Assembly (NCBI GenBank): GCA_002269645.1
Contig: NIVC01000562.1
Location: 124,001-188,000, forward strand
DNA: 64,000 nt
Source: Macrostomum lignano
Taxonomy: Eukaryota
Reading direction: 5' to 3'
Positions 9,701-62,874 of the stretch are shown here, one piece after another. Below the pieces are notes generated by a model. The model saw only the letters and a list, made by a program, of their open reading frames with translations, did not search any database and was not told the DNA's origin. Every line of letters starts with the position of its first letter. The first letter of the stretch is position 1. Position numbers and translations under genes: made by a program.

Positions 9701-12700
9701 TGTTGAAGGCTACAATAACAAGCTGTTTGTAAGTGATTCGTGTTGAAGGCTACAATAACAAGCTGTTTGTAAGTGATTCGTGTTGAAGGCTACAATGACA
9801 AGCTGTTTGTAAGTGATTCGTGTTGAAGGCTACAATAACAAGCTGTTTGTAAGTGATTCGTGTTGAAGGCTACAATAACAAGCTGTTTGTAAGTGATTCG
9901 TGTTGAAGGCTACAATGACAAGCTGTTTGTAAGTGATTCGTGTTGAAGGCTACAATAACAAGCTGTTTGTAAGTGATTCGTGTTGAAGGCTACAATGACA
10001 AGCTGTTTGTAAGTGATTCGTGTTGAAGGCTACAATGACAAGCTGTTTGTAAGTGATTCGTGTTGAAGGCTACAATAACAAGCTGTTTGTAAGTGATTCG
10101 TGTTGAAGGCTACAATAACAAGCTGTTTGTAAGTGATTCGTGTTGAAGGCTACAATGACAAGCTGTTTGTAAGTGATTCGTGTTGAAGGCTACAATGACA
10201 AGCTGTTTGTAAGTGATTCGTGTTGAAGGCTACAATGACAAGCTGTTTGTAAGTGATTCGTGTTGAAGGCTACAATGACAAGCTGTTTGTAAGTGATTCG
10301 TGTTGAAGGCTACAATACAAGCTGTTTGTAAGTGATTCGTGTTGAAGGCTACAATGACAAGCTGTTTGTAAGTGATTCGTGTTGAAGGCTACAATGACAA
10401 GCTGTTTGTAAGTGATTCGTGTTGAAGGCTACAATGACAAGCTGTTTGTAAGTGATTCGTGTTGAAGGCTACAATAACAAGCTGTTTGTAAGTGATTCGT
10501 GTTGAAGGCTACAATGAGAAGCTGTAATTGGAATGCACTGGTTGGAATGCACTGGTTGGAATGAAACTGTATTGCAGCATGTATTTCTGAAGCAGCATGA
10601 ATAGAAGGCCTGCAGCTGTTTACCTTTCCAATTCCACTAAATTAAAGAGCTGTTTAAATGTATTCTCCACTGTTTAACTGTGGGGCCTCATGCATATGCA
10701 ATTCCCGTGCCATGTGCTACCTTATGCCTGCTATTAAGACTTTTTCGTTGCTTTCACTGTTTGTTGCTAGCCAAGCGAGCATACAAACTATTTTGTCATA
10801 GTTACTAGTATAAGGAACGCAAGCCAAAATCAGTTAGACTTAGAAATATCATTAGTAAGTTTTCGTTTGTCATTGTTATTACTGCTATATTTTTATTTAG
10901 TTACTAAATGTACTATATATAGTCCTTTTGTGAGGCCGCTACTGTCAACTCCGGTTCTTCGCCGACTCATTTCAGAATCTCTATGCGACCATCGGGCGAA
11001 AGCTGAAGCAATTTGGCGAGATGCTCAGCTTGATGGATCAGCGGCTTAACTTTGGATTAGCCAAAGAGGAGGTGCGAAAGATGATGGTGAATTCGCTGCT
11101 TACTCCAGCCCGGCTTATAGCGTAAGTTTTATGAAACCCAATATACTCGGTGCTGTAGTGAATTGGCGGTGTAGTGAATTGGCGGTGTAGTGAATTTACG
11201 GTGTAGTGAATTGGTGATGTAGTGAATTGGTGATGTAGTGAATTGGTGATGTAGTGAATTGGTGATGTAGTGAATTGGTGATGTAGTGAATTGGCGATGT
11301 AGTGAATTGGTGATGTAGTGAATTGGTGATGTAGTGAATTGGCGATGTAGTGAATTGGTGATGTAGTGAATTGGTGATGTAGTGAATTGGCGATGTAGTG
11401 AATTGGTGATGTAGTGAATTGGTGATGTAGTGAATTGGCGATGTAGTGAATTGGTGATGTAGTGAATTGGTGATGTAGTGAATTGGTGATGTAGTAAATT
11501 GGTGATGTAGTGAATTGGTGATGTAGTGAATTGGCGATGTAGTGAATTGGTGATGTAGTGAATTGGTGATGTAGTGAATTGGCGATGTAGTGAATTGGTG
11601 ATGTAGTGAATTGGTGATGTAGTGAATTGGTGATGTAGTGAATTGGTGATGTAGTGAATTGGTGATGTAGTGAATTGGTGATGTAGTGAATTGGCGGTGT
11701 AATGAATTGGTGATGTAGTGAATTGGCGGTGTAGTGAATTAGCGATGTATTGAATTGGCGATGTAGTGAATTGGTGATGTAGTGAATTGGCGATGTAGTG
11801 AATTGGTGATGTAGTGAATTGGTGATGTAGTGAATTGGTGATGTAGTGAATTGGCGGTGTAGTGAATTGGTGATGTAGTGAATTGGCGGTGTAGTGAATT
11901 GGCGATGTAGTGAATTGGTGATGTAGTGAATTGGCGGTGTAGTGAATTGGTGATGTAGTGAATTGGCGGTGTAGTGAATTGGTGATGTAGTGAATTGGTG
12001 ATGTAGTGAATTGGTGATGTAGTGAATTTTTGATGTAGTGAATTGGCGGTGTAGTGAATTGGTGATGTAGTGAATTGGCGGTGTAGTGAATTGGTGATGT
12101 AGTGAATTGGCGGTGTAGTGAATTGGCGGTGTAGTGAATTGGTGATGTAGTGAATTGGTGATGTAGTGAATTGGCGATGTAGTGAATTGGCGATGTAGTG
12201 AATTGGTGATGTAGTGAATTGGCGATGTAGTGAATTGGTGATGTAGTGAATTGGCGGTGTAGTGAATTGGCGATGTAGTGAATTGGTGATGTAGTGAATT
12301 GGTGATGTAGTGAATTGGTGATGTAGTGAATTGGTGATGTAGTGAATTGGCGGTGTAGTGAATTGGTGATGTAGTGAATTGGCGGTGTAGTGAATTAGCG
12401 ATGTAGTGAATTGGCGATGTAGTGAATTGGTGATGTAGTGAATTGGTGATGTAGTGAATTGGCGATGTAGTGAATTGGTGATGTAGTAAATTGGCGGTGT
12501 AGTGAATTGGTGATTTAGTGAATTGGCGGTGTAGTGAATTGGCGATGTAGTGAATTGGTGATGTAGTGAATTGGTGATGTAGTGAATTGGCGGTGTAGTG
12601 AATTGGTGATTTAGTGAATTGGCGGTGTAGTGAATTGGTGATGTAGTGAATTGGTGATGTAGTGAATTTGTGATGTAGTGAATTGGCGGTGTAGTGAATT

Positions 12701-15700
12701 GGTGATGTAGTGAATTGGTGATGTAGTGAATTGGCGGTGTAGTGAATTGGTGATGTAGTGAATTGGTGATGTAGTGAATTGGCGGTGTAGTGAATTGGCG
12801 ATGTAGTGAATTGGCGGTGTAGTGAATTGGTGATGTAGTGAATTTTTGATGTAGTGAATTGGCGGTGTAGTGAATTGGTGATGTAGTGAATTGGCGGTGT
12901 AGTGAATTGGCGATGTAGTGAATTGGCGATGTAGTGAATTGGCGGTGTAGTGAATTTGCGGTGTAGTGAATTGGCGATGTAGGGAATTGGCGGTGTGGAG
13001 AAGTGGCACCGGTGAGAAAGGGCACCGGTGAGAAATGGCACCAGAGAGAGATGGCACCGGAGAGAAATGGCAACGGAGAGGATTGGCACCGGAGAGAAAG
13101 GGCACCAGAGAGAATTGGCACCGGAGAGAAATGGCACCAGGGAGAAATGGCACCGGTGAGAAAGGGCACCGGTGAGAAAGGGGACCAGAGAGAAAGGGGA
13201 CCAGAGAGAAATGGCACCAGAGAGAAAGGGCACCAGAGAGAAATGGCACCGGTGAGAAAGGGCACCAGAGAGAAATGGCACCAGAGAGAAAGGGCACCAG
13301 AGAGAAATGGCACCGGTGAGAAAGGGCACCAGAGAGAAATGGCACCAGAGAGAAAGGGCACCAGAGAGAAATGGCACCGGTGAGAAAGGGCGTCGGACTG
13401 ATAGGACGCCAGGGGTAAAGTTCTCTTCAAGGAAAGGGCAGCAAGACCTTGCAGAATTTCAGCAATCAGCAAGCTTAAATAAAGCGACTTGCGATTTGAT
13501 TCCAATAGCTTATGGCTAATTGTATGTTGTTGGGCGGGGCTGCTGGCCCAGCTTGATTGCTGTGTCAGTGGAATTAGACCAACCGTTGCCAATAAACTCA
13601 ACTGAAGTAGAAGAGCTAAGAAATTGTGCATTTGTGAGTGTATCGTTCTGCTGTTTTTTGCCTCTGTTGGACCCAGTTCTGCTTAATAGTTAATCAAAAA
13701 TACCTATTTTTGGCTCAGGATGTATATATTTAATGGCTTCGGCAATAAGTAGCATAAAAATGTTGTTCACTTGAGTCGCATCTAACTACTGCAAGTAGCC
13801 TAAACTGAGCGTGTGTGTTTTTCTTGTACTTTTCCATTTCCCAGCGAGATGCGGCTGTACCTGTTGGAACGGGATCGCTACCTGCGCAACGATCAGCTGG
13901 CCTGCCTGGAGTCGCTAACCCTGGCCCAAGTTGGCCAGTTTCACAAGCGGCTGCTATCAAAGCTATCTATTAAAGTCTACGTGCATGGCAACCATGGACC
14001 CGAGGTGGGTTAATGAATAAATGCTTGTGATAGATTTGTCAAGCCATGTGTTTTTTGGTACATACTGGCAAATACAGGTGTTTTTGTCCTATCCACATCA
14101 GGCGTATTTACTAACCACATCAGGTATATTCAGTCAGCCATAACGGGTATATTTAATCAGCTAAAACGGCAATATTAATTATTAATTAGCCACATCAGGT
14201 ATATTAATCGGCCACATCAGGTATATTAATCAGCCACATCAGGTATATTAATCAGCCACATCAGGTATATTAATCAGCCACATCAGGTATATTAATCAGC
14301 CACATCAGGTATATTAATTAGCCAAATCAGGTATATTAATCAGCCACATCAGGTATATTAATCAGCCACATCAGGTATATTAATCAGCCACAATGGTATA
14401 TTAATCAGCCACATCAGGTATATTAATCAGCCACAATGGTATATTAATCAGCCACATCAGGTATATTAATCAGCCACAATGCCATGGTATATTAATCAGC
14501 CACATCAGGTATATTAATCAGCCACAATGGTATATTAATCAGCCACAATGGTATATTAATCAGCCACAATGGTATATTAATCAGCCACAATGGTATATTA
14601 ATCAGCCACATCAGGTATATTAATCAGCCACAATGGTATATTAATCAGCCACATCAGGTATATTAATCAGCCACAATGGTATACTAATCAGCCACAATGG
14701 TATATTAATCAGCCACATCAGGTATATTAATCAGCCACAATGGTATATTAATCAGCCACAATGGTATATTAATCAGCCACAATGGTATATTAATCAGCCA
14801 CATCAGGTATATTCAACCAGCCACATCAGGTATATTAATCAGCCACAATGGTATATTAATCAGCCACATCAGGTATATTAATCAGCCACAATGGTATATT
14901 AATCAGCCACAATGGTATATTAATCAGCCACAATGGTATATTAATCAGCCACATCAGGTATATTAATCAGCCACAATGGTATATTAATCAGCCACAATGG
15001 TATATTAATCAGCCACAATGGTATATTAATCAGCCACAATGGTATATTAATCAGCCACAATGGTATATTAATCAGCCACATCAGGTATATTAATCAGCCA
15101 CAATGGTATATTAATCAGCCACAATGGTATATTAATCAGCCACAATGGTATATTAATCAGCCACATCAGGTATATTCAACCAGCCACATCAATTATACTG
15201 AATTGGCCACAAGTAAATTTAATTAGCACAGCACGTATGCATAATTAGTTAGCCACAACAGGTATATATAATGAGCACACCATTTTTATTGAATTAGCCA
15301 CTCCATAGCTCAATATGCACTGGATTATTTGTTTGATTTTCCCACTCTGTGTGTTATGATCGGCTTAGAAGAGCTTTCCTTATAATTATTTCCCTGCTGA
15401 CAGGACGCAAAGAACTACTTTCGTTATATTGTGTCCGTCCTGGATCCCGGCTGCGAAGTTGCCAACTGCCAGGTGAGAGAGTACAGTTACTACTTGGTAA
15501 TTTATTTTTGAAGAAAAGTGTCAATATTGATTTTCTATCAGCTGTCATCAGTTAGGCATTTAAAAACAATAACAAAATACACCTCGCTCCGGTCACGAGT
15601 GGCCACAGAGGGGGGGAGGTATCAGAGCGCACGCCTTTGTGGCCGCACTCCTGAAAAAGTAGCATATTTAAAAAAGAAATCAAAAGAACATACCGCATAC

Positions 15701-18700
15701 CTACATGAAAATATTATGCTAATTATGCTATGTCATAAGTTTTGCAGTACTGTCGCTAATCAAATTGAGTAGCAAATTTCATGCAGAGATTTTAATACAC
15801 TTTTCGTCTATTCTACTGCAAGTAGGATTTCAGAGTGTGACTTAAAAATTATTCTCTCAGCCAAACAAATCTACAAAGCTCTGTGTGATGCGGTACAGTA
15901 CATATATACATAATATTAGAATACATATGCGATCTTCATATAGAGGCATGGCGTGCAAAATTTGCTTAAAGTATTCGTAACAAGATTATTAAATGAGGGC
16001 TCAAAAGTCAGCAGAATGGGCAGAATTGCCGTCAGCGCTGGTGTGTGGGATGATGTCGCCGAAGGCGTTGCGTCAGGGTGCCCGCAGCCCTTTCAGGTAA
16101 AAAATGTCTTAGCAATTTCTAATCAATAGTCAGCCCTAACGTAACTCTGTTTCTGGCTGCATGGGTACTGGGATGATTTGACCATAGACAATCGACTCGG
16201 ACAATCAAACTGAGATCGGCACCATAGATCTCGGCCTCGGCTTGATTGTCTATAGTCTATGGCCAAGCCACCCAGACAACAGATACTTAGCCCTGAATTG
16301 CATACGAAGCATACAATTTGCTTGAATAACAAATCTCATTTTGAGTGTCAGTACGCTCGTAAAAGTTTCAATGATCAACGAATGCCATCTTCAAAGTAGC
16401 CGATGCGCTAGGCCAGCGTTCCGCGCTCCCTGTACCAGCTGACCAGCACAGCCGCGGCCACAATGCAGCTGGGCAGGCAGACCAGTAGGCTAACAGCAGC
16501 TGAGCCAACTAGCATAGCAACGCATTGCCTGTGCGAGCCGACCTGGGCTAGGAAACTGGCCAATACGAATGCCAGGCCGGTGGCCAGCACCAGGCTGTGC
16601 GCTGCGCACGCGCCCAGCTGTAGACGGGCATTGAGAAACAGTCGGCCGCTTAGGCAGCTCAGGGCCACGCTTAGTCCGGCGGTCAGGGCGCTGCTTGCGC
16701 ACGTAGCGAAACCCAGGCCTGCGTGTGGGAGGGATGGAATGGGGAAATTTAGGCCTATCTCTGGTTGTAGGCTGCTTGTGGGCACCCTAGCGCAATGCCT
16801 TCGGCGACACTGTCCCACAACCAGCGCTGAGGTAATTCTGCCCATCCCACTTACAATGACTCTTGAGCACATAAAAGCCCCCCCCCATAGTGGTTAGGGG
16901 TTGTAGCCTAGTGGTTAGAGCGTCGGACTCACGACTTGAAGGTCGGTGGTTCGATTCCCGATCCCACTGGAACAATTTGTGCCCTTGAGCAAGACACTTA
17001 GCTCTCCATTGCATCAGTTCATTCAGCTGTAAAATAATTTCCAGCATTAGCTGGGGTAATTGAGGGTGTGTGGCGACCCCCCAGTCCTTGGACTGAACAG
17101 CCGTACGCAGCCTTCAGATGCGCCGCGCAATAGCTGCGGCTGAGCTGTGGTTGCACATCTGGCCCAATCGAGGAAGAAGGTGTAATCAAAAAAGGCGCGC
17201 CAATACTGTACGCCGACACGCACTCATACACACGCTCACAGGCTGTACAGAGGCCCTGATTTTCTAAACGTCAGGCATGTACGCTCTCTGTGCCTTTGGG
17301 GGGTTGGCCTTCATGGTTGTAAATAGGACGACAACCCCAAAACTTCGTGCACAGAAGCCCCAAATGAATGTTTGCGCACGGAATCGAACCAGGGGTCCTA
17401 GCGCGTGAGTCGATCGCGTTTTTACCGCTGAGCTGCCTTCTAGATACTATGGATTAATATTTGATGGATGGGATCTGGGATCGAAAAAAATTGAAGAATT
17501 GAAGAAATTAGGATTCGGATTAGATATCATATTCTGAACTATACATAGGCATATGAAATTGAGATATTTAGATGCTGGTGACGGTATCTGATATACGAGC
17601 GTATGCTTTGTATTATTGTCATATTGTTATAGAAATTCGGTTTAAAAATAAATCATAATTAATTTCTGCAACTGCTTTTCTTCCGGTCACTGTCGGTGCA
17701 ACATGTGGATTATCTAAATCCTACGGAGGGTGGCAAGTCAGGACGGTGCCGTCTCACCTGAGCATTCTAACATTCTCCTTTAAGATTGACATTAACGGTT
17801 GTTATTCGCGCAGCTAAACTCCTGGGATTCGAGCCCGGGTCCTCTAATACCGCTCTGGCGCTCTAACAAATTAGCCCTTCGACGCCAATTTGAAATTGCA
17901 TTTCCGTGTTTAAGTTGGCTTTGTGGTAGGGGGTAAATTTTTCCTTACATTTTGGTGACTTGCTTCTGTCTGTCGCTTCAACAGGCGGCAGTCGGCATGG
18001 AAAAGGGAGGGGCGGGTGGAGGCAGCAACCCGAAGGTTTGACACTTTTTGTGAACTCTTTTATAAACTTTTATAAACATCTTGGTTGTTAGGCCCGTCTG
18101 CACTTTAAGTCCAGTCCGTCAGTTGTTAGGAGGGAACACGACTTTTTCTTAAAATGTAGCTTGGAATATTTTCCTACTGCAAAAGCATAGAGAAGCACCG
18201 CGGCTGCAGCACAGGGGCATAATGGGATTCTTAGGCAGTGCGGAAAGTTGCGGGGGGCGAAAACTATTGAGAGCGAGTGGCTTCGCATAATGGAATTTGA
18301 GGAAACTATAATATAGAAAAATAATACTGGCCTCGTGCGGCTTCTAAAGTTATTAGGACCTATTTTTAATTCTACTCCGCATAATTATTCAGTCTATTAG
18401 TTATAATAAAAGTCTGAAAGTATGAATAAAGCTTTGTCCCCCCCCTCCCGGGGTGTGTTAACTCAGGCCCGCGATGGACAGTTAATGGGATTTTTCTCAA
18501 ACCCTTCCGATCCAACGCTTGAATGCTTACAGTCGCAGCGTTGCCGAATTCTAATTCGCTTACGCTACGCTCGATTGCGCGCTATGCAATTCCTCTTTCC
18601 TAGACTCCCGCGCCAGCCCCTGGCAAGGCCACGCAGCCTCATTTTGGCACTATCAGACCTGGCCGTGATTTCCAACTCAACTCCGGCTCAGCTTCTGTAC

Positions 18701-24700: not shown

Positions 24701-27515
24701 GCTTTCTTAGAAAATATTTGAAGACTGACTTTACCAGACAAATGGACTTTTTATAAGGCAGGAGGGTTGTGTGCACCCTGGCCATACATGCGCAACAGTC
24801 GGCCGAGTCGGCCGATTCGGCCGACCGATTTGGCGGCCAACCAAGGAAGTCGCAAAAATACCCACCCAAAAATTTACCTAAGTAGTAGTACTAAGTAGCT
24901 GACGAGGCATTTTGGCTTAATAAGACAGTTATAGTTACTCCTGCCGTTTACCCAAAGTTGCGTTTATTTTGCTTTAGAGTTTTTTGATGTGTAAGTCGCA
25001 TTTTTGGCCAAAAACTACGTCGCATTTTTGTTAAAACTAAGTCGCATGGCCGACCGAATTTTGGAGGTTGCGCATGTATGACCCTGGCGCACTTTAAGCG
25101 ACATTGTCACACAAGCGCGCGGATACGTACGCAGTCATACGCACAGGCACACACTCACACAGGAGTGTACAGCGGCCCTAACTTTATTTATCGTTAGTCA
25201 TGTACACTTCACTGCGCCTTGGGGGTTGGCTCTTAAGGCCGTTAATTGCACGAGCAGAGCCAAGCCGAGATTCCAATTTAGCCCCAAATTAATGTGACTG
25301 CACTTGGAATCGAGCCTGGGTCGCTGGCACATGAGAGGGCCGGTACGGCCACCCCTAAACAGAAAAATACACTACACGGAGATATAAACTTTTTCATTGT
25401 TTTTTCGGCACAAAAATAGCAATAGTTTTTATATAGGAAGCATTTTCGAATGCTCACTTTCTGATTAGACATACCTGTGTAGTTTTTTGCTACTGTAAGT
25501 AGTCAAACAAACAAGTTCCAACCTGCCGACTGGTTTCAGCACATGATGTCCGAGCCGTGCTACGACTATCTGCGCACCAAGCACCAGCTAGGCTACCAAG
25601 TGTACTGCGACAGTCGGCAGACTAACGGCGCCATCGGGTTCATGGTGCAGGTGAACAGCCAGGCGGACCAGTTCAGCATGGCCCAGCTGCAGGCCAGGGT
25701 GGACAAGTTCACTGGCGGTCGCTTTCTCAAGCTATTGACCGGCATGTCGGACGAGGCGTTCTCGAATTACGCCAGGTCTCTTGTCGACCTGCTGCTGGTT
25801 GAGGATGTCGGCATGACTCAGCAGGCTGATCGGTACTGGTGCGCGATACTGGACAATGGCCCGGCCTGTCCGCCTGCCGCTTTTGGACTGCACTACACCG
25901 AGGCTGAGATGCTGCTGCACTCGGTTACTAAGGCTGAGGCCATCGAGTTCTATCAGCGGGCTCTGCGCTCCACTGGCAGGCGGTCATTCACCTTTCAGGT
26001 GAGTTGGGTCATGGTTTAGATCTTTGTAGCTTTTGGTGGAGTGGAGTAGATTTTGGTACATATTATGCTAGAGTAGAGTGCGTCTGGGTGTTTTGGTAGA
26101 GTATAGTAAAATCGGCGATAGATTATGGTAGAGAGGCTTCATCGTCTTTTATATAGTAGAGTAGATTTTGTAGATTATAGCTCGTAATAGAGTAGAGTGG
26201 GTCTTGGTAGGTTTGGTAGAGTAGATTGGATGTTGGTAGGTTTTGGCAGAATGAGTCTGTGTAGATTTTGATACATTAGAGTGAGTCTTGTTTGGTAGAG
26301 TAGAGTGAGTCTGGGTAGATTTTGGTAGAGTAGAGTGAGTTTTGGTAGATTTTGCTAGAGTAGTGAGTATTGGTAGATTTTGTTAGAGTAAATTGACTCT
26401 TAGTAGAGTAGAGTGAGTCTTGGTAGAGTAGAGTGAGTCTTGGTAGAGTAGAGTGAGTCTTGGTGGAATTTGGTAGAGTAGAGTGCGTCTTGGTAGGTTT
26501 GGTAGACTGAATCTGGATATATTTTGGTAGAGTAGATTGAATGTTGATAGGTTTTGGTAGAGTAGATTGAATGTTGATAGGTTTTGGTAGAGTAGATTGA
26601 ATGTTGATAGGTTTTGGTAGAGTAGAGTGTATCTGAGTAGGCTTTAGTAGGGTAGAGTGGAAATGGGTAGATTTTTTTGTAAAGTAAGAGTAGAATGGGT
26701 GTCTGAGTAGATTCGGCAGAGTAGAGAATAGGTTCGAGTTCAGTAGAGCGGGTCAGCTCAAGTTTAAAGGTGTCTAGACTGGCTTTCAATGCTAATAATT
26801 CAATGGCACGAAGTTTGCAGAAACAATTCGTCACTGGAAGGTGCGATGCAAGCAGTCGGTGCTGTTAATAGCTTAGCACCTTTGATCTTTAATTGTCCAG
26901 CTGCGGTTTCTACCTAATACTTTGTATCTAATATACTGGGTGACATCTGCTATAAGCTCGTGCCCATAAACCTGACTCATTTTTATTAGAATATATACTT
27001 ATTACCGACCTGCTGCCAGGTGGCAGCTCACTTTATAAACGGGTCTGACTCTCGTGCCACGACCCCTGGTTAGATTCCGTGTGCAGGCACATTCATTCAC
27101 TTGGGGCTTGTGTGAACGATTAGACAGTCAGGGCCGCTATTCACTCCACGTGAGCGTGTGCATGACTGCGTGCCTGCGTACAGTATTGGCGCGCTTGTGT
27201 GTGCTCAGGAGTCAGTGGAATGGGCAGAATGGCCTCAGCGCCGGTTGTGAGCCGATATCGCCGAAGGCGTTGCACTGGCAGCCCTCCTGCAATAATCACT
27301 ATTCATCCCCCACACTGTTCAAGGCGGAAGGCGCGACCAAGAAAGTGTCCGGCCGGGCTGGCAAGAAGCCATTCGCCATGCCGCTGTGCTACTCAACAGA
27401 CACTGTCGACAGCCAAGCCAAGGACGGCGACGAAGAAGAGTGCATCGTCTGGACTGGAGACCTGCACCAGTTCAAAGCCAGCCTGCAGTACAATGCAGCT
27501 AGGGCGATTGTTTAA
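3..27515 (+). CDS. NRDC: Nardilysin (M16A metallopeptidase), 5'-partial; C-terminal two thirds in 12 exons
   Basis: Exons built by hand with GT-AG and consistent phases: <3-619, 2730-2904, 3671-3761, 3860-3911, 5208-5291, 5388-5457, 10976-11121, 13845-14004, 15404-15472, 23526-23672, 25540-25998, ~27324-27515 (last acceptor AAG, less certain). Motifs HEGPGSVL, FRFQEEDEPADSVE, LHLPLPNQFV, YPVRLL..YKDRKFKTPRA, IRVEGYNDKL, VHGN, EPCYDYLRTKHQLGYQVY and EDVGMTQQADRYW follow the order in nardilysin. PCYDYLRT..LGYQVY and VNSQADQF fit nardilysin better than IDE. The HXXEH site would lie upstream of the window. Confidence 0.88.
624..787 (+). repeat. (TCTG)n microsatellite directly after the nardilysin donor at 620
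   Basis: Near-perfect TCTG run of about 40 units. Confidence 0.97.
2081..2158 (+). mobile_element. SINE family A, tRNA-derived head only
   Basis: TAGCCTAGTTGTTAGAGCGTCGGACTCACGACTTGAAGGTCGGGGGTTCGATTC has A and B boxes and matches the heads at 2238, 16897, 49264 and 57432. Confidence 0.75.
2238..2575 (+). mobile_element. SINE family A (tRNA head, Deu/Nin-like core, ATT-rich tail)
   Basis: A/B boxes, then CCTTGAGCAAGACACTTAACTC..CACCCAGCTGTAAAATGGGT, ending in (TTA/CTA)n; four near-full copies in the window. Confidence 0.85.
3072..3482 (+). repeat. 21-bp minisatellite ATCTCCACTTAGAATCCAGCT
   Basis: About 19 tandem units in the intron 2905-3670. Confidence 0.95.
3945..5162 (+). repeat. 29-bp G-rich minisatellite TGTGGGAGGGTGACGGCATGGTCTGAGAA
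   Basis: About 42 units filling almost the whole intron 3912-5207; source of the minus-strand pseudo-ORFs. Confidence 0.96.
5425..10525 (+). repeat. 40-bp minisatellite made of the last 33 nt of a nardilysin exon plus its 5' splice site
   Basis: Unit ATTCGTGTTGAAGGCTACAATGACAAGCTGTTT|GTAAGTG. The first copy (5425-5464) is the real exon end IRVEGYNDKLF and donor; ~125-128 copies estimated from length. Confidence 0.97.
11150..13390 (+). repeat. Compound 16-bp minisatellite: (GTGATGTAGTGAATTG)n to ~12995, then (GGCACCAGAGAGAAAT-like)n
   Basis: Two unit families share one period and join in phase; the array starts ~28 bp after the donor at 11122. Confidence 0.95.
14095..15190 (+). repeat. 21/22-bp minisatellite GTATATTAATCAGCCACA(ATG/TCAG)
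   Basis: About 50 interspersed units of two length variants. Confidence 0.95.
16408..22083 (-). CDS. Nested antisense two-exon gene; ~166-aa four-transmembrane protein (MS4A/CD20-like topology)
   Basis: Exon 1 is 22083-21894 (ATG CCG TTT...ACG G|GTGAGT, phase 1). Exon 2 is 16718-16408 (CCCCATTCCATCCCTCCCACACGCAG|GC CTG GGT, phase 1, ends TAG). The joined frame is open: MPFVPP...KLIGSAIGVLMHGAMAATADAVFAANSCTSVTGLGFATCASSALTAGLSVALSCLSGRLFLNARLQLGACAAHSLVLATGLAFVLASFLAQVGSHRQCVAMLVGSAAVSLLVCLPSCIVAAAVLVSWYRERGTLA. It has four hydrophobic segments and exon-like GC content. Alternative ATGs lie at 22056 and 22044. Confidence 0.7.
16897..17170 (+). mobile_element. SINE family A copy
   Basis: Same head and core as 2238-2575. 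Confidence 0.85.
17195..17440 (-). mobile_element. SINE family B copy (diverged)
   Basis: Reverse complement has a GGTTCGATTCC B box and the body shared with 49945-50301 and 50325-50620. Confidence 0.7.
17700..17885 (-). mobile_element. Probable third tRNA-derived SINE head
   Basis: Minus strand reads GGCGTCGAAGGGCTAATTTGTTAGAGCGCC..GGGCTCGAATCCCAGG (A/B-box-like); single copy in the window. Confidence 0.4.
18808..19975 (+). repeat. 30-bp minisatellite GGGTCACTGATACTGTCCAGATCATTCACT
   Basis: About 39 units; the 3n period creates pseudo-ORFs on both strands. Confidence 0.96.
21160..21720 (+). repeat. 20-bp minisatellite ATTTGGCTATGAAGGAAGAC, block 1
   Basis: About 28 units; same unit as 22636-23390. 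Confidence 0.95.
22636..23390 (+). repeat. 20-bp minisatellite ATTTGGCTATGAAGGAAGAC, block 2
   Basis: About 37 units with internal higher-order repetition. Confidence 0.95.
23780..24060 (+). repeat. ~50-bp (2x25) degenerate minisatellite AGAGTACCCCCAGAGATACCTAACT/AGAGTACCTTCAACTGTACCTCACT
   Basis: About 5 dimeric units downstream of the donor at 23673. Confidence 0.85.
24748..25353 (-). mobile_element. SINE family B copy interrupted by a hAT MITE
   Basis: Head at ~25353 on the minus strand and tail at ~24748; the body is split at ACCCTGGC, which is uninterrupted in the 43173-43551 copy. Confidence 0.8.
24783..25080. mobile_element. hAT-type MITE, 298 bp
   Basis: 14-bp TIR CATACATGCGCAAC/GTTGCGCATGTATG; 8-bp TSD ACCCTGGC at 24775-24782 and 25081-25088. 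Confidence 0.92.
26020..26760 (+). repeat. Degenerate ~23-29-bp repeat TTTTGGTAGAGTAGA(GTGAGTCT)
   Basis: Decaying tandem array starting just after the donor at 25999. Confidence 0.8.
27085..27285 (+). mobile_element. SINE family B, 3' part
   Basis: CAGGGCCGCT..GTGCTCAGGAGTCAGTGGAATGGGCAGAATGGCC.. is shared with the other B copies. Confidence 0.7.
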
Positions 27516-28611
27516 GCTTCTGGCTAGCGATATTAATACTGGATGGACTACTGTTTTTGTTTTGGCTAAGTTTCTCTTTTAATTGATAATTTAATTGACT
27601 CCTGTTCTGTAGCCCTTGAAATTGTAGGCAGAGGTTGCTTTATAAAGAGAGCCAACCTCTGGCCCTGGTGCGTACTCCCAACTATTATTAATCAGAGCAC
27701 GAACAGGAGTCTATTAAAATGGACTTTTATAATCTGTAGTATAGGCAACGTTAACCAGTCAAAAGACCATGCAATTATGACAATACGAGTATACTGCTGT
27801 ACTTTAACAAGGTTTTTAAAGGATTTAAAAATTTTTAAGCTACCGTGGTCTCTTGACTGGTTTATTACTCGTATACTCCATAAACAGCCTTTAGATTGCC
27901 TTTATTAGGCATTAGAGTACTTTTATTTAAGCCAAGCGTGTGTTTGTTTTAAATTAAACTTTATTGCTTTTTTCAAACCCTTTCTAAGTAATTTACTAAT
28001 TATTTTGGTTGTATACTACTTAATGCGCGCTCAGTCCTACTGCTATCCATTTCTGCGACTTTAACCGACTTTAAGCATCAGGCTTTACTAGTATACACAA
28101 AGCCCAAAGCCTAAAACTGAACTCCATGCGCTACACTGACTGAAGCACAAACTAAGCAGATAAATCAATTTTTAGGAGTTTTACTTTTTTGCTCATTTTT
28201 TTCTGCCGAAAACTTGTTTAAAGATATTTCAATTGCTTATTTATTTCTTTTTTATCTAGTAGGCATTAGAAAATTGTTTCAGTAGCCGAAATCTATTGTC
28301 TTCTTTCACTTGCTCTATTCTCTCCCTCTTCTCTACCTCTATCTCTCTCCCTCTCTTATCTACCTTTACCTCTCCCCATCTTCACTCTGACTCTCTCCCT
28401 CTCCATCTCCACCACAGCTTCTCCCTCTTCACCTCTTCTTATCCTCCTTCCCCTTCTGCCCTCTTTCTCTACCTCCCACTCACCTCTCACCCTCTTCTTC
28501 CTTTCACTTTGCATCTGTGAACTGTAAGCGCATGTTTATACTGATTTGTGAGAACATTTGAAACATACTAACTATTCTACACCTCTGCCTCTTCCGCGTG
28601 CCCATTTTCAG

Positions 28612-28680
28612 GCGACAGCAGTGGGATACCGCAAGTCGGCTACCGCTGAAGAGTTGCCTCGCAACGGGCAGCAGCAGCGG

Positions 28681-28712
<32 letters not shown>

Positions 28713-31700
28713 ACAGCAGCAAAACGGTACCAGTTCCGGCGGAGCTGCAGTGAGCAACGGCCTGGGGCTGCACCGTCAGCAGCAGCCGGGCCAGTCGGCT
28801 GGCCGGGCGCCTCGCTCCAACAAGCCGCCGGCGCCGCGGCCTCCGCCCCGCCAATCAGCGCCAACTTCGCCTCAGCAGCCGCAGCCTCAGCCGCCGCCGA
28901 CTCCGCCTCGGCCGTCAGCTACGCCGACACACGTCGCCACCAGCAATGGCGCCGCTTCGCTGCAATTATCGCAGCAAAAAAAGCAACAATTAGAAGAGCA
29001 GAAGCTGCTTTTGCAGCAGCAATATTTAGAGCATCTGCGCAAGCGTCAAGAGCAGCAACAACAGCAACAGCAGCAGCAGGAAGAGCGGCAATCAGAATTG
29101 CCCGGTCAGCCACAACGAGGCCAGGCTGTCCGCCAGACCGGCCGGTCCCGCCTTCAGGTGAAGCGCTGCGAGGTGAACGAGAAAATTCACCGCGAGCTGC
29201 AGCTGACCAAAGGCGCTGAGAACATGCTGAGGGTGACGCGAGACAAACAGGCCAAGGCGCAAATTTCTGTTGAATTGAAATACGCCTATTCTAATCTGGA
29301 CCTGCTTCAGCGGGAACTCGCCGACATCAACGAGGCGCTGGAGGTGTACCAGGACACCAGCGCCTGTTTGCCTATGATCCCGCTGGGCTTGAAGGAGACT
29401 CGGCCGCTGGACTATGAGCCTGCGCTGGCCGACTTCATCGAGGAGCACTACAGCGCCAGGCGGGACGACTATCGGCACTGCTTTGTTGAGCTCAACCGCC
29501 TGCGAGAGGCCGCGCGCAGGCCGCTGCGCTCCGAGCAGGGCGTGGCGGACATCTTTGTCTACTTGAATCACCTGTGGTAAGTTGGCCGCTTCAGCTGACT
29601 GCTTGTAGCTGATTAACTCGCTCATGAATTAATCATTTGTAAACTCATTAACTCATAACCTCACTCATGAACTCACTCATAAACTCATGAGCTCACCCAT
29701 GAGCTCACTCATAAATTCGCTCATGAACTCGCTTATGAACTCATGAACTCATTTACTCAACCTTGAACTTGGTCATAAACCCACTCCTGAACTCACTCAT
29801 GAACTCATGAACTCAACCTTGAACTTGGTCATAAACCCACTCATGAACTCACTCATGAACTCATGAACTCAACCTTGACAACAACAACAACAACAACAAC
29901 AAAATACGCGACCCCGCATGCACAGTCACAGTTAGAGCAGGGCGCGTCAGATGGCGCGCCGCAGAGCCTGGGAGCGAACAAAGTCCGCTTCGTTGGCAGT
30001 GTCGGGCGCCCCAGCGTTGCACAGCAGGCAGTCCACGTATCGACGGGTTCGGGCCCGACCCTGCCTGAACGGACCCTGCAAGGTGAGCAGCAGGACGTCC
30101 TGAACAGGTTGGGGGCAGTAGCCCTCGGCCCGGATCACGTGGCCCGCCAGTTGAAGTCGCCGCCGGCGCAGGATGGTGGACGAACCTTGAACCTTGAACT
30201 CACTCATAAACTCCTGAACTCGTAAACTTGTGAACTCAGTTAGGAATTCACTCGCTCATTGAATCAGTCGCTAACTGGCTCTCTCACCCAGGTACCTGGA
30301 CCGCAGGTTCTTCGCCCCGTGGCGCTCGCACAGCCTATTCTTCCACTGGTTCGACTCGTTCACCGGTGTGGCCTTCACCCAGCGCAGCTTGGCATTCGAG
30401 AAGGCCTGCATGGCCTACAATTTGGCGGCCGTATGCAGCCAGCTGGCGCTCTCGTCGGCCCGTCAGCAGCCGGAGGCGGCGCTAAAATGGCTGCTGCGCA
30501 GCTGGGGCGCAATCCTGTTCGTGGCGGAGAACTACACAAATGCGCCCAGTATGGATATGAAGTCGGCCGTACTGGAGATGACTGCAAACCTGTTGAGAGC
30601 GCAAGCCTACGAGTGTCAATATCAATTGGACTATCAGCAGCAGCAGCAGCCTTGTGAGTGCTTGAATAAGTCGTTTTCTTAGAAATGCATTTTTATCACC
30701 CCACCTTTTTATTACTCCCCAAATGGTATCTCAGCAACTCCCCATTGAGCCATGGCATCTCAGCAACTCCCCATTGAGCCATGGTATCTCAGCAACTCCC
30801 CATTGAGCCATGGCATCTCAGCAACTCACCAATCGAGCCATGGCATCTCAGCAACTCCCCATTGAGCCATGGCATCTCAGCAACTCCCCATTGAGCCATG
30901 GCATCTCAGCAACTCACCAATCGAGCCATGGCATCTCAGCAACTCACCAATCGAGCCATGGTATCTCAGCAACTCCCCATTGAGCCATGGCATCTCAGCA
31001 ACTCCCCATTGAGCCATGGCATCTCAGCAACTCCCCATTGAGCCATGGCATCTCAGCAACTCACCAATCGAGCCATGGTATCTCAGCAACTCCCCATTGA
31101 GCCATGGTATCTCAGCAACTCCCCATTGAGCCATGGCATCTCAGCAACTCCCCATTGAGCCATGGTATCTCAGCAACTCCCCATTGAGCCATGGCATCTC
31201 AGCAACTCCCCATTGAGCCATGGTATCTCAGCAACTCCCCATTGAGCCATGGTATCTCAGCAACTCCCCATTGAGCCATGGCATCTCAGCAACTCACCAA
31301 TCGAGCCATGGTATCTCAGCAACTCCCCATTGAGCCATGGCATCTCAGCAACTCCCCATTGAGCCATGGCATCTCAGCAACCCACCATTGAGCCATGGCA
31401 TCTCAGCAACTCAGTTGCTCCAACTAGTGACCTCAAATGACCCCAAATAATTTACCTGCATTAACCTACAGCCCAGCAGCCGCAGTCAAAGCCGAATTCA
31501 ATCCAGGGCCTGGCCGAGTTCTACCTGGTCCGGGCTCAGGCCGCCGAGTTTATCAGCGACGTATTCAACAATGTCGACACTCGACTGTCCGGCGACATTC
31601 TGCGCTACTCGGACTTCATACCGGACACCTGGCTGACTCTGGTACAGCTCAAAACCAACTATTTCAAAGGACTGGCCCGACTCGCCTTGGCCAACTTCAT

Positions 31701-31841
31701 GGTGGACGCCCTGGCCTTGTCCGGGACGGCCGTTCCAGTGGCCGAGGTTGTCACCAGGCTGACCGAAGTCCTGCTGGCCAGGAATTCTAGGAAACCCACC
31801 ACCTCCGGCGAGCTGCGGGCCTTTGGTTAGTTACCTGCTAC

Positions 31842-31898
<57 letters not shown>

Positions 31899-31949
31899 GT
31901 CTGTCTGCCCGTCTGTCTGTCTGTATGTCTATCTGTCTGTCTGTCTGCC

Positions 31950-32017
<68 letters not shown>

Positions 32018-34265
32018 TGTCTGTCTGTCTGTCTGTCTGTCTTTCTGTCTGTCTGTCTGTTTGTGTGTGTGTCTGTCTGTCTGTCTGTCTTTCTGTCTTA
32101 GTGTCTGCCTGTCTGTCTGTCTGTCTGTCTGTCTTGTCTGCCCCTCTCAATCCGTGACTGCATGATAGCATAAAAAATCTAGTATTCTATTCGGCTCACT
32201 CAACTCTCACACGGAATCCCTCAGCCCGACTGTACGCAGCCGAGGCCATGTCGTGCTTCGAGGAGGCCATCCGGTTGATGTCGCTTAACAAGAAGCTGAG
32301 TGACCTGGCAGTGTGCAGCAACACGCTAAATCGGCTGCACTCTAAGTAAGTTCTAATAAATTGGTTTTAAAAGATTCTTTACTTAGCGGAATTAGCCGGT
32401 ACGCTCTGTACCTGCAGCACTAAAAATAGAACTGCTCAGTATGAGAATCCTGTATTTAACCGAAATGTTTTTTGTATTGAAATAGTGTTCAACTGTCTGT
32501 TTAGCTCTCTGTTTTGAAAATATTTCTTGACACCAAGTGTTTTAGTGGGATACTAACTTTTAACTCGTTGAAGGACTAACTCATTTGAGTTGAAGCTACT
32601 GATAGTAGTTTTTGCCATTGTTGCTCAAATCCTCAGTTGCTGTGCCACCGGCACCTTCCCAGATCCTCAGTTGCTGAGCCAGCCTCCCAGATCCTCAGAT
32701 GCTGAGCCAGCCTCCCAGATCCTCAGATGCTGAGCCAGCCTCCCAGATCCTCAGATGCTGAGCCAGCCTCCCAGATCCTCAGTTGCTGAGCCAGCCTCCC
32801 AGATCCTCAGTTGCTGAGCCAGCCTCCCAGATCCTCAGTTGCTGAGCCAGCCTCTCAGATCCTCAGGTGCTGAGCCAGCCTCCCAGATCCTCAGTTGCTG
32901 AGCCAGCCTCCCAGATCCTCAGTTGCTGAGCCAGCCTCCAGATCCTCAGTTGCTGGGCCAGCCTCCCAGATCCTCAGTTGCTGAGCCAGCCTCCCAGATC
33001 CTCAGGTGCTGAGCCAGCCTCCCAGATCCTCAGTTGCCAGGCCACCGCCTGCACCCTCCCAGATCCTCAGCTGCTCATCAATAAAATCATTTCGCCGAGT
33101 CACTTTCGCATGCTCCAAATTTCCTATCGTCGAAAAGTCTTGTCAATCATTTCTACAAGCACGAAACTTCCAAGCAGTTTTGTAAAACTACAAGCTTCAA
33201 TTTTTTTGTTTTCGAAGATGTGATGTTTCATGCTTGTGAGGTTTCGAGCTTCAAACTTTCGTGTTTGCAGAAGGCATCCTTTCAGGGGGCAGAGCAGCTT
33301 AGCGGGCACCAAGGGTGCACATGCCTGACGATCAGAAAGTCAGGGCCGCTGTACACCCTGTGTGAGCGTGTGTATGAATGCGTGCCTGCGTACAGTACCG
33401 GCGCGCTGGCACGTGCTCAGGAGTCAGCGGAATGGGCAGAATTGCCTCAGCGCTGGTTGTGGGATCGATGTTGCCGAAGGCGTTGCTCCAGGATGCTTGC
33501 AGCTCTCTTGCGAATATTTGTTATTATTATAAACACTTGTTTCACCTACCCCTGCCCGCCAGAGCCCGCACGCTGCACATGGACATCGAGCTGGAGCCCA
33601 GCGCCCAGCTGGTCTCATTCTACTCCAGCGGCATCCGGGCCCGCATCGGCCGCGCCCTGTCGCCAGATGAGCCGAACTTCCACCGCCACCCGGTGCAGGA
33701 CCTGTTCACCGCGCTGGGCCCAATCGGGTTTTTCAATTCGCGCAACGCCTGGTCGCAGCCGCGGGAAATTCGGCTACATCGCGGCGAAGGCGACGGCGGC
33801 GGCAGCGGCAGCTTCGGGTTCAGCCTGGCCGGCGAGGCTCCAGTGACCGTGGCCTCAGTAGACGACAGCGGCCAGGCGAAGGCGAACGGCCTGGAGCCGC
33901 GTGATGTAGTCATCGGAGTCGGCGACCAGGATGTGAAATGGGCATCGCACGAGCACCTGAGCCGTCTAATCCGGGAGAGCAGATCGGCACTCCGTCTGTG
34001 GGTTGTCAGCCCGCTGGAGACGCCGCGGCCTCCGCAACAACAGCAGGACGAATCCGCCAATGCTGGCGGCGGCTCCGTCACTGGCAGCGTTCGCTCCGTG
34101 ACTGGCGGCGGTCTTCACCAGATGCAAGCAGCTGGCAAGTCCGGTCAGCAAAGCTGGCGGAAGCGGCTGTCCGGATCTTGGCTGTTCCGTCGGCGGAAGG
34201 CGCGCAGCGAAAGCGCCGGCCGACGCGGCGGCGGTAACAAAGAGTCGGCAAAGTCGACGCTGTGA
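28612..34265 (+). CDS. RHPN: Rhophilin (Q/P-rich N-terminus, HR1, Bro1, PDZ); no ATG in the first coding exon
   Basis: Exons 28612-29576, 30292-30653, 31472-31825, 32225-32345, 33563-34265; phases are consistent, 2505 nt in total. HR1: [42 protein letters not shown]. Bro1: [51 protein letters not shown]: [42 protein letters not shown]. This domain order is diagnostic of rhophilin. Confidence 0.93.
29879..30182 (-). mobile_element. 5'-truncated RTE-clade LINE 3' end
   Basis: Minus strand encodes [40 protein letters not shown], typical of the RTE ORF2 C-terminus. It has a (TTG)n tail and candidate TSD AACCTTGA at 29871-29878 and 30183-30190, inside a degenerate AACTCATG repeat (29630-30260). 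Confidence 0.85.
30722..31412 (+). repeat. 29/30-bp minisatellite GAGCCATGGCATCTCAGCAACTCCCCATT
   Basis: About 24 units filling rhophilin intron 2. Confidence 0.96.
31842..32140 (+). repeat. (TCTG)n/(TG)n compound microsatellite
   Basis: Fills most of rhophilin intron 3. Confidence 0.96.
32630..33075 (+). repeat. 28-bp minisatellite CAGATCCTCAGTTGCTGAGCCAGCCTCC
   Basis: About 15 units in rhophilin intron 4. Confidence 0.95.
33285..33490 (+). mobile_element. SINE family B copy (internally deleted)
   Basis: GGGGCAGAGCAGCTTAGCGG head joined directly to the 3' body. Confidence 0.7.
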
Positions 34266-39490: not shown

Positions 39491-42317
39491 ATGGCGTCCA
39501 AGTTTGATCTGGGCCAAGAAAATATTTCTCACAGTAGGAGGATGGAAGCGCTGAAGCCAACTGTGCTGCGGAAGAAGACAGCATTCAAGCCATTTGCTGA
39601 TGCTAAATCAACTATTAGCAGGTCTGTGTCTATGCATATTTATTAATTCAAATACAATATCAATGGGATTATTGGTGCTTGGTTTTGTCAATTAGAGATT
39701 AGAAATCGGGTATCCTTGGGATCTTTGCTTGGGAACTAGAATCTGTCTTTAGGTCCATCCCTATGTATGAAAAAATGTGCAGTGTCTGATGGTTTGAAAG
39801 TTAAAGATACCACTGTGCAAACTCTAACGACTATCCTCGATTTATGATCAATAAAATACCATATAAAAGATCCCTTATTGCCTGGGTGCTAACTACGGCT
39901 ATTTTTGCTTAACTTTTCTACTCTAGAAAATCTGAACATTTATAGAACTTCTTGGCTCAGGTTAGATGTAGTCTGAGAGCGGCCAGTCACTGTAGGCTAA
40001 CTACTCAATCTCCCATTTCTTAGCACCCAGTCACTGTAGGCTAACTACCCAATCTCCCATTCTTAGCACCCAGTCACTGTAGGCTAACTACCCAATCTCC
40101 CATTCTTAGCACCCAGTCACTGTAGGCTAACTACCCAATCTCCCATTTCTTAGCACCCAGTCACTGTAGGCTAACTACCCAATCTCCCATTCTTAGCACC
40201 CAGTCACTGTAGGCTAACTACCCAATCTCCCATTCTTAGCACCCAGTCACTGTAGGCTAACTACTCAATCTCATATTCTTAGCACCCAGTCACTGTAGGC
40301 TAACTACCCAATCTCCCATTTCTTAGCACCCAGTCACTGTAGGCTAACTACTCAATCTCCCATTCTTAGCACCCAGTCACTGTAGGCTAACTACTCAATC
40401 TCATATTCTTAGCACCCAGTCACTGTAGGCTAACTACCCAATCTCCCATTTCTTAGCACCCAGTCACTGTAGGCTAACTACTCAATCTCCCATTCTTAGC
40501 ATCCAGTCACTGTAGGCTAACTACTCAATCTCCCATTTCTTAGCACCCAGTCACTGTAGGCTAACTACCCAATCTCCCATTCTTAGCACCCAGTCACTGT
40601 AGGCTAACTACCCAATCTCCCATTCTTAGCACCCAGTCACTGTAGGCTAACTACCCAATCTCCCATTTCTTAGCACCCAGTCACTGTAGGCTAACTACCC
40701 AATCTCCCATTTCTTAGCACCCAGTCACTGTAGGCTAACTACCCAATCTCCCATTTCTTAGCACCCAGTCACTGTAGGCTAACTACTCAATCTCATATTC
40801 TTAGCATCCAGTCACTGTAGGCTAACTACTCAATCTCCCATTTCTTAGCACCCAGTCACTGTAGGCTAACTACCCAATCTCCCATTCTTAGCACCCAGTC
40901 ACTGTAGGCTAACTACCCAATCTCCCATTCTTAGCACCCAGTCACTGTAGGCTAACTACCCAATCTCCCATTTCTTAGCACCCAGTCACTGTAGGCTAAC
41001 TACCCAATCTCCCATTCTTAGCACCCAGTCACTGTAGGCTAACTACCCAATCTCCCATTCTTAGCACCCAGTCACTGTAGGCTAACTACTCAATCTCATA
41101 TTCTTAGCACCCAGTCACTGTAGGCTAACTACCCAATCTCCCATTCTTAGCACCCAGTCACTGTAGGCTAACTACCCAATCTCCCATTTCTTAGCACCCA
41201 GTCACTGTAGGCTAACTACCCAATCTCCCATTTCTTAGCACCCAGTCACTGTAGGCTAACTACCCAATCTCCCATTTCTTAGCACCCAGTCACTGTAGGC
41301 TAACTACTCAATCTCCCATTCTTAGCATCCAGTCACTGTAGGCTAACTACTCAATCTCCCATTTCTTAGCACCCAGTCACTGTAGGCTAACTACCCAATC
41401 TCCCATTCTTAGCACCCAGTCACTGTAGGCTAACTACCCAATCTCCCATTCTTAGCACCCAGTCACTGTAGGCTAACTACCCAATCTCCCATTTCTTAGC
41501 ACCCAGTCACTGTAGGCTAACTACCCAATCTCCCATTCTTAGCACCCAGTCACTGTAGGCTAACTACCCAATCTCCCATTCTTAGCACCCAGTCACTGTA
41601 GGCTAACTACTCAATCTCATATTCTTAGCACCCAGTCACTGTAGGCTAACTACCCAATCTCCCATTTCTTAGCACCCAGTCACTGTAGGCTAACTACTCA
41701 ATCTCCCATTCTTAGCATCCAGTCACTGTAGGCTAACTACTCAATCTCCCATTTCTTAGCACCCAGTCACTGTAGGCTAACTACCAATCTCCCATTTCTT
41801 AGCACCCAGTCACTGTAGGCTAACTACTCAATCTCCCATTCTTAGCACCCAGTCACTGTAGGCTAACTACTCAATCTCCCATTCTTAGCACCCAGTCACT
41901 GTAGGCTAACTACTCAATCTCCCATTTCTCAGCAGCCGTTCGAATCGGCGTCGCGTCGGCGAAGCCGCCACCCAGACGGAGCTGCCGCCAGCTTTTACTG
42001 ATGCCAACGTCCAGACCGGTGTGCCGGACGCCGAGCTGGCCTGGCTGACGGCCGAGGAGCAGCCGGACTCGCCTGAATATCTGGCCAGACTGGCCGAGAG
42101 TCGCCGACAGGCTCTGTCCGAATCGTTGGAAGAGAATGCCAAACTGGCCGAGGAGAATCGGCAGCTGACCGACCTGCTGGCTGCCATGATTAACGACGCC
42201 GACGCCGCCGCCGCTGCTATTGCCGAGTCCGCTGCCTACGCCGTCGCTGAAGACGGCAGCGGCACCTGCCCGCACTGCGGAGGTCGCGGCACCTCGCCGG
42301 TGGCTGGTCAGGAGTGA
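39491..42317 (+). CDS. GMNN: Geminin-family coiled-coil protein (divergent), two coding exons
   Basis: Exon 39491(or 39542)-39621 (AG|GTCTGT, phase 2) joins 41933-42317 (TTTCTCAG|C, NAGNAG, phase 2). PEYLARLAESRRQALSESLEENAKLAEENRQL matches the geminin signature [24 protein letters not shown]. There is no C-terminal TIRT-like domain, so geminin is more likely than multicilin or GemC1. Confidence 0.7.
39983..41932 (+). repeat. 43/44-bp minisatellite containing a branchpoint, pyrimidine tract and AG; last unit is the geminin acceptor
   Basis: Unit CACCCAGTCACTGTAGGCTAACTACCCAATCTCCCATTCTTAG, ~45 copies; only the final unit ends TTTCTCAG. Confidence 0.96.
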
Positions 42318-43172: not shown

Positions 43173-43551
43173 AAAATTTTTCATCAGAGGCAGGGGCTGT
43201 GTGCACCCTGGCGCACTTTAAGCGACATAGGCACAACCGACGAGAGGCATTGCTGCCCATTCCGCTGACTCCCCTAAGCAGGCACACAAGCGCGCGGATA
43301 CGTACGCAGTCATACGCACAGGCACACACTCACAGGAGTGAACAGCGGCCCTAACTTTATTTATCGTTAGGCATGTACACTTCACTGTGCCTTGGGGGTT
43401 GGGCCTCAAGCTGAGCGGTTAATTGCACAAGCAGAGCCAATCCGAGATTCCAATTTAGCCCCGAATTAATGTGACTGCACTTGGAATCGAGCCTCGACCA
43501 TGTCACATCTGACATCAGAGCGCCGCGCTAGACCGCTAGATTACGGCGCCC
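43173..43551 (-). mobile_element. Full-length SINE family B copy
   Basis: tRNA-like head at 43551 on the minus strand and an A-rich tail; candidate TSD CTGCGGTCA at 43164-43172 and 43552-43560. Confidence 0.85.

Positions 43552-45588: not shown

Positions 45589-62874
<17,286 letters not shown>

Follow-up and report, generated by a model that had tools for sequence, protein, structure and literature searches.

The window analyzed here is a 64,000-nt stretch of the Macrostomum lignano genome (assembly GCA_002269645.1, contig NIVC01000562.1, positions 124,001 to 188,000 of the forward strand), and all positions are counted from its first nucleotide. A gene for an M16 metallopeptidase (nardilysin/insulysin-like), cut at the window start, occupies positions 1–27515 of the forward strand, with Pfam Peptidase_M16_M and M16_C matches on its exons and huge introns filled with tandem arrays, e.g., at 3011–3431, 3893–5246, and 11041–13682. 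It is followed on the same strand by a rhophilin gene, the translational start of which is the subject of this report. Farther downstream, a gene for an EAG/KCNH-type K+ channel extends from 45590 to the window end (+) and encodes PAS, Ion_trans, and cNMP-binding domains. Its first exon (45590–45668) has its own ATG and a GTAAGT donor, and its introns include very long, coding-looking tandem arrays (58065–59238 and 59330–61700). A dispersed SINE-like repeat of about 160–200 bp is present in at least eight copies in the window, with 77–88% identity; one copy immediately precedes the final M16 exon and another lies just 5' of rhophilin exon 5 (Table 1). A weak Rfam tRNA match (16897–16966) lies beside one of the SINE-like copies, and ARAGORN found no tRNA.

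The five rhophilin exons, when joined, comprise 2,505 nt or 834 codons plus a stop, which gives 835 aa with a donated Met, the length stated in the original prediction. All five exons have YAG acceptors, their donors read GTAAGT, GTGAGT, or GTTAGT, and the ORF is uninterrupted from 28612 through the donor at 29576 to the stop at 34265. With residues numbered to include the donated Met and Pfam gathering thresholds applied, the protein contains an HR1 repeat (PF02185, 37.3 bits, cut-off 33.1, residues 186–242), a BRO1 domain (PF03097, 156 bits, residues 256–669), and a PDZ domain (PF00595, 32.2 bits, cut-off 23.2, residues 682–748), and its BRO1 part matches the BRO1 domains of PTPN23, yeast Bro1, and ALIX in the PDB (E 2e-18 to 4e-9). 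On this predicted HR1–BRO1–PDZ architecture, with the domains in canonical order, the gene is a rhophilin. RHPN1 and RHPN2, which are Rho-GTPase-binding scaffolds, have the same three domains in the same order; unlike them, the M. lignano protein is extended N-terminally by a long Q/P-rich stretch and carries Q-rich inserts, and its gene provides no N-terminal ATG.

The closest proteins are insect proteins of the HR1+BRO1 type, with 40–44% identity over these two domains, and homology searches that included a collection of 5.8 billion sequences found none above 44%. A protein look-up returned no exact match to the 834-, 835-, or 630-aa versions of this rhophilin, a metagenome scan gave no match to the start of exon 1, and the searched supplements of the M. 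lignano genome and transcriptome papers contained no RHPN or rhophilin entry. The rhophilin introns are mostly minisatellite (30723–31412, 31841–32140, 32657–33037, 29651–29878). Their arrays include a 29-bp unit repeated 23.6 times, (CTGT) repeated 75 times, a 28-bp unit repeated 13.6 times that carries the short palindrome CTCAG-TTG-CTGAG, and an array of the ACTCATGAACTC type of 56–120 bp.

Table 1. Positions of the features discussed in the text, counted from the first nucleotide of the window.
Feature	Position	Strand	Remarks
Stop TAA of upstream M16-peptidase gene	27513..27515	+	1,096 nt before rhophilin acceptor
Spacer, putative outron	27516..28611	+	1,096 nt, AT-rich, 7 ATGs
In-frame TGA closing the rhophilin frame	28549..28551	+	60 nt 5' of acceptor
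Polypyrimidine tract and 3' splice site, CACCTCTGCCTCTTCCGCGTGCCCATTTTCAG	28580..28611	+	Proposed SL trans-splice acceptor
Rhophilin exon 1	28612..29576	+	174 Q/P-rich low-complexity codons, conserved N-terminus, HR1, BRO1 start; donor TG/GTAAGT
Out-of-frame (+1) ATG, context gcaATGg	28946..28993	+	15-codon ORF, TAG 28991-93
Conserved block, ~35 codons shared with other rhophilins	29119..29223	+	From alignment; 5' of first in-frame ATG
HR1 (Rho-binding) repeat coding region	29164..29334	+	Pfam PF02185
First in-frame ATG	29224..29226	+	Codon 205 of exon 1, in GAENMLRV, inside HR1
Rhophilin exon 2	30292..30653	+	BRO1
Rhophilin exon 3	31472..31825	+	BRO1
Rhophilin exon 4	32225..32345	+	BRO1 end
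Rhophilin exon 5	33563..34265	+	PDZ, basic tail, stop TGA 34263-65
SINE-like copies	33300-33500, 27116-27273, 50481-50620, 15999-16081, 55078-55201		
SINE-like copies	17195-17280, 43232-43380, 25114-25207	-	

The 5' boundary of exon 1 is marked by a strong splice acceptor, …CCCATTTTCAG/GCG, whose last base is 28611, so that the exon begins on a codon boundary (28612, phase 0). The 21 nucleotides at 28591–28611 read CTTCCGCGTGCCCATTTTCAG and are followed by GCG ACA GCA GTG GGA TAC. The 20 nt from -22 to -3 of this acceptor are 80% pyrimidine and lead into TTTTCAG/G. When the 65 AG dinucleotides within 28560–29165 were ranked, the site at 28611 had the best context, which is at least as good as that of the four internal acceptors of the gene. 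It also fits [T/C]TNCAG, a motif enriched at trans-splice sites in M. lignano (PMC8629364). The rhophilin frame is open over 28552–29577, with a TAA at 29578, and from 28612 onward it runs for 204 codons containing neither stop nor ATG. Between the acceptor and codon 205, a distance of 612 nt, the sole ATG in any frame is that at 28946, and its short ORF contains an A7 run at 28976–28982, 30 nt past the ATG. The original prediction, that the exon opens in phase 0 with A-T-A-V (GCG ACA GCA GTG) and first meets an in-frame ATG some 200 codons downstream within HR1, agrees with both the sequence and the frame.

The significance of the missing ATG derives from homology that extends upstream of the first in-frame ATG, and not from the length of the ORF. 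Conservation with homologs begins at about codon 170–175, and the homolog block GSDPRxATCRGKLQSRRSKLNQEINKELRLRAGAEN aligns here, ending exactly at the first in-frame Met. The Pfam HR1 model begins 20 residues before this ATG. Alignment and frame scanning together revealed no in-frame AUG of the gene's own 5' of these phylogenetically conserved N-terminal residues. A start at Met 206 (codon 205) would delete ~35 conserved residues, HR1 positions 1–20 among them, and initiation must therefore lie further 5'.

The Q/P-rich stretch preceding the conserved block is a putative coding region. In dinucleotide shuffles, the chance that a given frame stays open over 28612–29133 was P ~0.065, and over the first 111 codons (28612–28945) it was P ~0.28, so that openness of the frame over the N-terminal stretch weakly exceeds chance. 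A codon log-odds score and a synonymous-codon score did not set frame 0 apart from the rest over the N-terminal 174 codons, a result of the Q/P/A-rich composition of the region, and the segment just 5' of HR1, which is necessarily coding, likewise scores like non-coding sequence in these tests. Other rhophilins have 2–30 residues before the conserved block, which makes the 174-residue extension unusual. A second frame, +2 relative to that of rhophilin, is open for 189 codons on the same strand (28650–29216); it is Ala-rich, GCC-dominated, and devoid of ATG, and is most likely a by-product of composition. Because this frame is open as well, ORF length is weak evidence of coding in this region.

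A start codon might be supplied by an upstream exon joined in cis, and the spacer between the M16 stop codon and the rhophilin acceptor was searched for one. A CT-rich tract of ~200 nt (about 28290–28500) lies ~100 nt 5' of the acceptor. Two inverted repeats are present within 27590–27718/27735–27880, one with 18-nt arms of 94% complementarity placed 93 nt apart and the other with 35-nt arms of 74% placed 76 nt apart; these may represent MITE-like insertions or structure in the 3' UTR of the M16 gene. The seven ATG-initiated ORFs of the spacer are 3–43 codons in length and allow only 12 combinations of an ATG with a GT. Potential donors were scored on a generic donor matrix, on which the four donors of rhophilin itself score 4.1–9.7 bits. 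None of the seven ATGs in 27516–28611, in any of the 12 combinations, could be spliced in frame to 28612 via a credible donor. The sole phase-0 pair, ATG 27777 with the GT at 27789 (CGA/GTATAC), was rejected on its donor score of -0.5 bits. Better donors occur at 27668 (7.0 bits), 28524 (5.5 bits), and 27988 (4.5 bits), and none of them is reached by an ATG-initiated frame. The best donor linked to an ATG is that at 28548 (TTT/GTGAGA, 3.7 bits), which is in phase 1; the corresponding join of ATG 28532 to 28612 was rejected, as it shifts the frame and runs into a stop after 17 codons. Two earlier statements about this interval are thereby upheld, namely, that no ATG-bearing phase-0 exon was found between 27515 and 28611 and that the donor-like GTAAGC at ~28524 follows no ATG, this donor being outside every ATG-initiated frame.

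The alternative source of a start codon is a trans-spliced leader. The spliced leader (SL) of M. lignano is CGGTCTCTTACTGCGAAGACTCAATTTATTGCATG, ending in …TTGCATG (PMC8629364), and this sequence is highly conserved in the SLs of M. cliftonense and M. hystrix, whose final ATG is a likely start codon (PMC10468722). All flatworm SLs reported so far have a 3' ATG in common, and later papers credit Cheng et al. (2006, J Biol Chem 281:733) with establishing the 3'-terminal AUG of flatworm SLs as an initiator Met. Several genes of Echinococcus granulosus match conserved N-termini only when the SL AUG is included (PMC3510090). In M. lignano, trans-splicing affects ~30% of genes, and conserved genes make up 70% of these (PMC8629364); calculated from the counts in that study, ~45% of conserved genes are trans-spliced. 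The established use of SL AUGs in flatworms, together with these gene fractions, confers a high prior on SL-dependent initiation here and also means that the mechanism itself is not new.

Joining the SL to position 28612 in silico placed the first AUG of the mRNA at nt 33, where it is followed by GCG and reads MATAVGYRK. No stop separates this AUG from the main ORF, with which it is in frame; its context, with T at -3, is weak. A pattern search allowing three mismatches and an Rfam search found no SL RNA gene in the 64-kb window. The proposed sequence of events is that the rhophilin pre-mRNA would be cotranscribed with the M16-peptidase gene on the same strand, or transcribed from just 3' of it, and would then be trans-spliced to the SL at the acceptor ending at 28611, giving the junction …CAATTTATTGCATG/GCGACAGCAGTGGGATAC. 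The terminal AUG of the leader would thus be placed before GCG as the only in-frame AUG 5' of the conserved HR1 residues, and ribosomes starting on it would produce a protein of 835 aa, M-A-T-A-V-G-Y-R-K…, with a 174-residue Q/P-rich N-terminal extension. On the genomic evidence, the start of rhophilin at an SL AUG joined to 28612 is the best reading of the locus and is considered rather probable. The general premise of the original prediction, that flatworm SLs end in an AUG capable of initiating translation, is borne out by the published M. lignano SL and by Cheng et al. (2006), and those of its predictions that could be tested on sequence held, but it had missed two alternatives, one involving the ATG at 28946 and its A7 run and the other a micro-exon beginning at ATG 28532.

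Under the first of these, the assembly would contain an indel, the true sequence at 28976–28982 being A8, so that the ATG at 28946 would be the gene's own start and the CAG/CCG-rich 28612–28945 a 5' UTR, whether trans-spliced or not. This ATG is the sole one before codon 205 and has G at both -3 and +4, the addition of one A to the A7 run brings it in frame with HR1, and the resulting 63-residue N-terminus would be nearer the usual rhophilin length; the unremarkable openness of frame 0 over 28612–28945 is also consistent with a 5' UTR. However, the proposal presupposes that sequencing or assembly went wrong at one particular site, while the remaining conserved exons of the window's three large genes contain no frameshift, and as assembled the ATG opens only 15 codons. 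The presence of a strong acceptor in phase 0 with the ORF would moreover be a coincidence, albeit one expected in one case of three. An indel of this kind is therefore considered improbable. Programmed frameshifting at the A7 run was also considered and dropped as unsupported.

A small probability is likewise assigned to the proposal that no AUG is donated, the 5' end being either unspliced or joined to a non-coding leader exon through the donor at 28524 or 27668, with initiation at a near-cognate codon 5' of HR1 or at the internal AUG 29224. The two spacer donors are decent and lie outside every ATG-initiated frame, and the N-terminal 174 codons carry no independent coding signal. Use of AUG 29224, however, would yield a protein lacking the first third of HR1 and the ~35 residues conserved with insect rhophilins, and scanning ribosomes would first meet the out-of-frame AUG at 28946, which is in good context. 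A housekeeping-type signaling protein rarely has a non-AUG codon as its only start.

The micro-exon proposal concerns cis-splicing of a 16-nt coding segment that begins at ATG 28532 (ATGTTTATACTGATTT/GTGAGA) to an acceptor at 28619, 28859, or 28919, with a product starting MFILIS…. All three joins are in frame and free of stops, the acceptors have CAG and 60–70% pyrimidine, and the donor scores 3.66 bits compared with 4.13 for the weakest real donor of the gene. Against this, the same donor joined to the strong acceptor before 28612 gives the frameshift and early stop already described, whereas the acceptors that would keep the frame are less strong and come 3' of a better AG. ATG 28532 stands in a poor context (C at -3, T at +4), and the five-residue hydrophobic start that it would encode has no counterpart in homologs. 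Its likelihood is accordingly put very low.

Similarly slim is the chance that the SL is joined to a different phase-0 acceptor within exon 1 (28876–28891, 28975, or 29158), which would leave the mechanism unchanged and shorten the protein. Exon 1 offers several phase-0 YAG sites preceded by at least 60% pyrimidine, the site at 29158 (CCGCCTTCAG/GTGAAG) fits [T/C]TNCAG, and a shorter N-terminus would be more like that of other rhophilins, but none of these sites equals 28612 in strength or has a long pyrimidine tract, and use of 29158 would remove the conserved TGRSRLQ block.

Initiation on an SL AUG joined to 28612 would probably make rhophilin an instance of a well-described flatworm mechanism. 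Like the SL-AUG-initiated flatworm mRNAs, including those of E. granulosus (PMC3510090), the gene has an acceptor of the same type in phase with the ORF and no in-frame AUG of its own 5' of conserved residues, and the SL of its genus ends in AUG. Its presumed SL-started N-terminus, however, is a low-complexity stretch of 174 residues, whereas those mRNAs encode few residues before the conserved N-terminus. Set beside the trans-spliced genes of M. lignano (PMC8629364; a 2017 study, PMC5730564), rhophilin has an acceptor that fits [T/C]TNCAG and is itself a conserved gene, a class enriched among them. The case also resembles that of slORFs, ORFs that begin at start codons of spliced leaders in nematodes, ascidians, and euglenozoa (slORFfinder, PMC9851317), in that the leader would supply the start codon and annotation based on SL-trimmed reads would miss it. 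In contrast, slORFs mostly use near-cognate NUG codons and often represent new or upstream ORFs, while rhophilin would use a canonical AUG for its main conserved ORF.

An operon-like arrangement of genes has been described in M. lignano (PMC8629364), and the M16–rhophilin pair may be a case of it, with a same-strand gene ~1.1 kb upstream and repeats in the spacer. The raw distance from the M16 stop codon to the rhophilin acceptor, 1,096 nt, includes the ~200-nt CT-rich tract and the short inverted repeats, and is slightly above the 1-kb threshold of M. lignano operons, which is repeat-adjusted. The spacing and the partly low-complexity character of the spacer could fit the operon-like arrangement.

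Elsewhere in the window, a 135-codon open frame at 41910–42314 (+; also delimited as 41933–42313), which ends in GA/GTGAGT or TGA and is preceded by a tandem array and by TTTCTCAG/CAG acceptors, gives a marginal match to the Geminin coiled coil (22.4 bits, cut-off 22.2), with no in-frame ATG 5' of the match. It was rejected as a second case of initiation on an SL AUG, since none of its acceptors is in phase 0 relative to the ORF and such an AUG would be out of frame. This frame probably represents either an internal exon or the last one of a geminin-like gene that lacks annotation.

The general understanding of trans-splicing is unchanged by the rhophilin gene, as SL-AUG initiation in flatworms has been documented since 2006 and appears common. 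A rhophilin transcript not trans-spliced at 28612 would contain no in-frame AUG before the middle of HR1 and would present an out-of-frame AUG first, and trans-splicing could consequently act as a switch. Strict gating of full-length rhophilin by SL trans-splicing, as an on/off control over a Rho-effector scaffold and its lineage-specific 174-residue Q/P-rich extension, is accordingly a possibility, put forward tentatively. For annotation, pipelines that trim the SL would call rhophilin 5'-partial or would start it at Met-205, truncating HR1, and for transgenesis and reporter work in Macrostomum, promoter fusions of SL-AUG genes would need an artificial ATG. If confirmed, rhophilin would provide a clean case of a conserved signaling protein that is impossible to make without the AUG of the leader.
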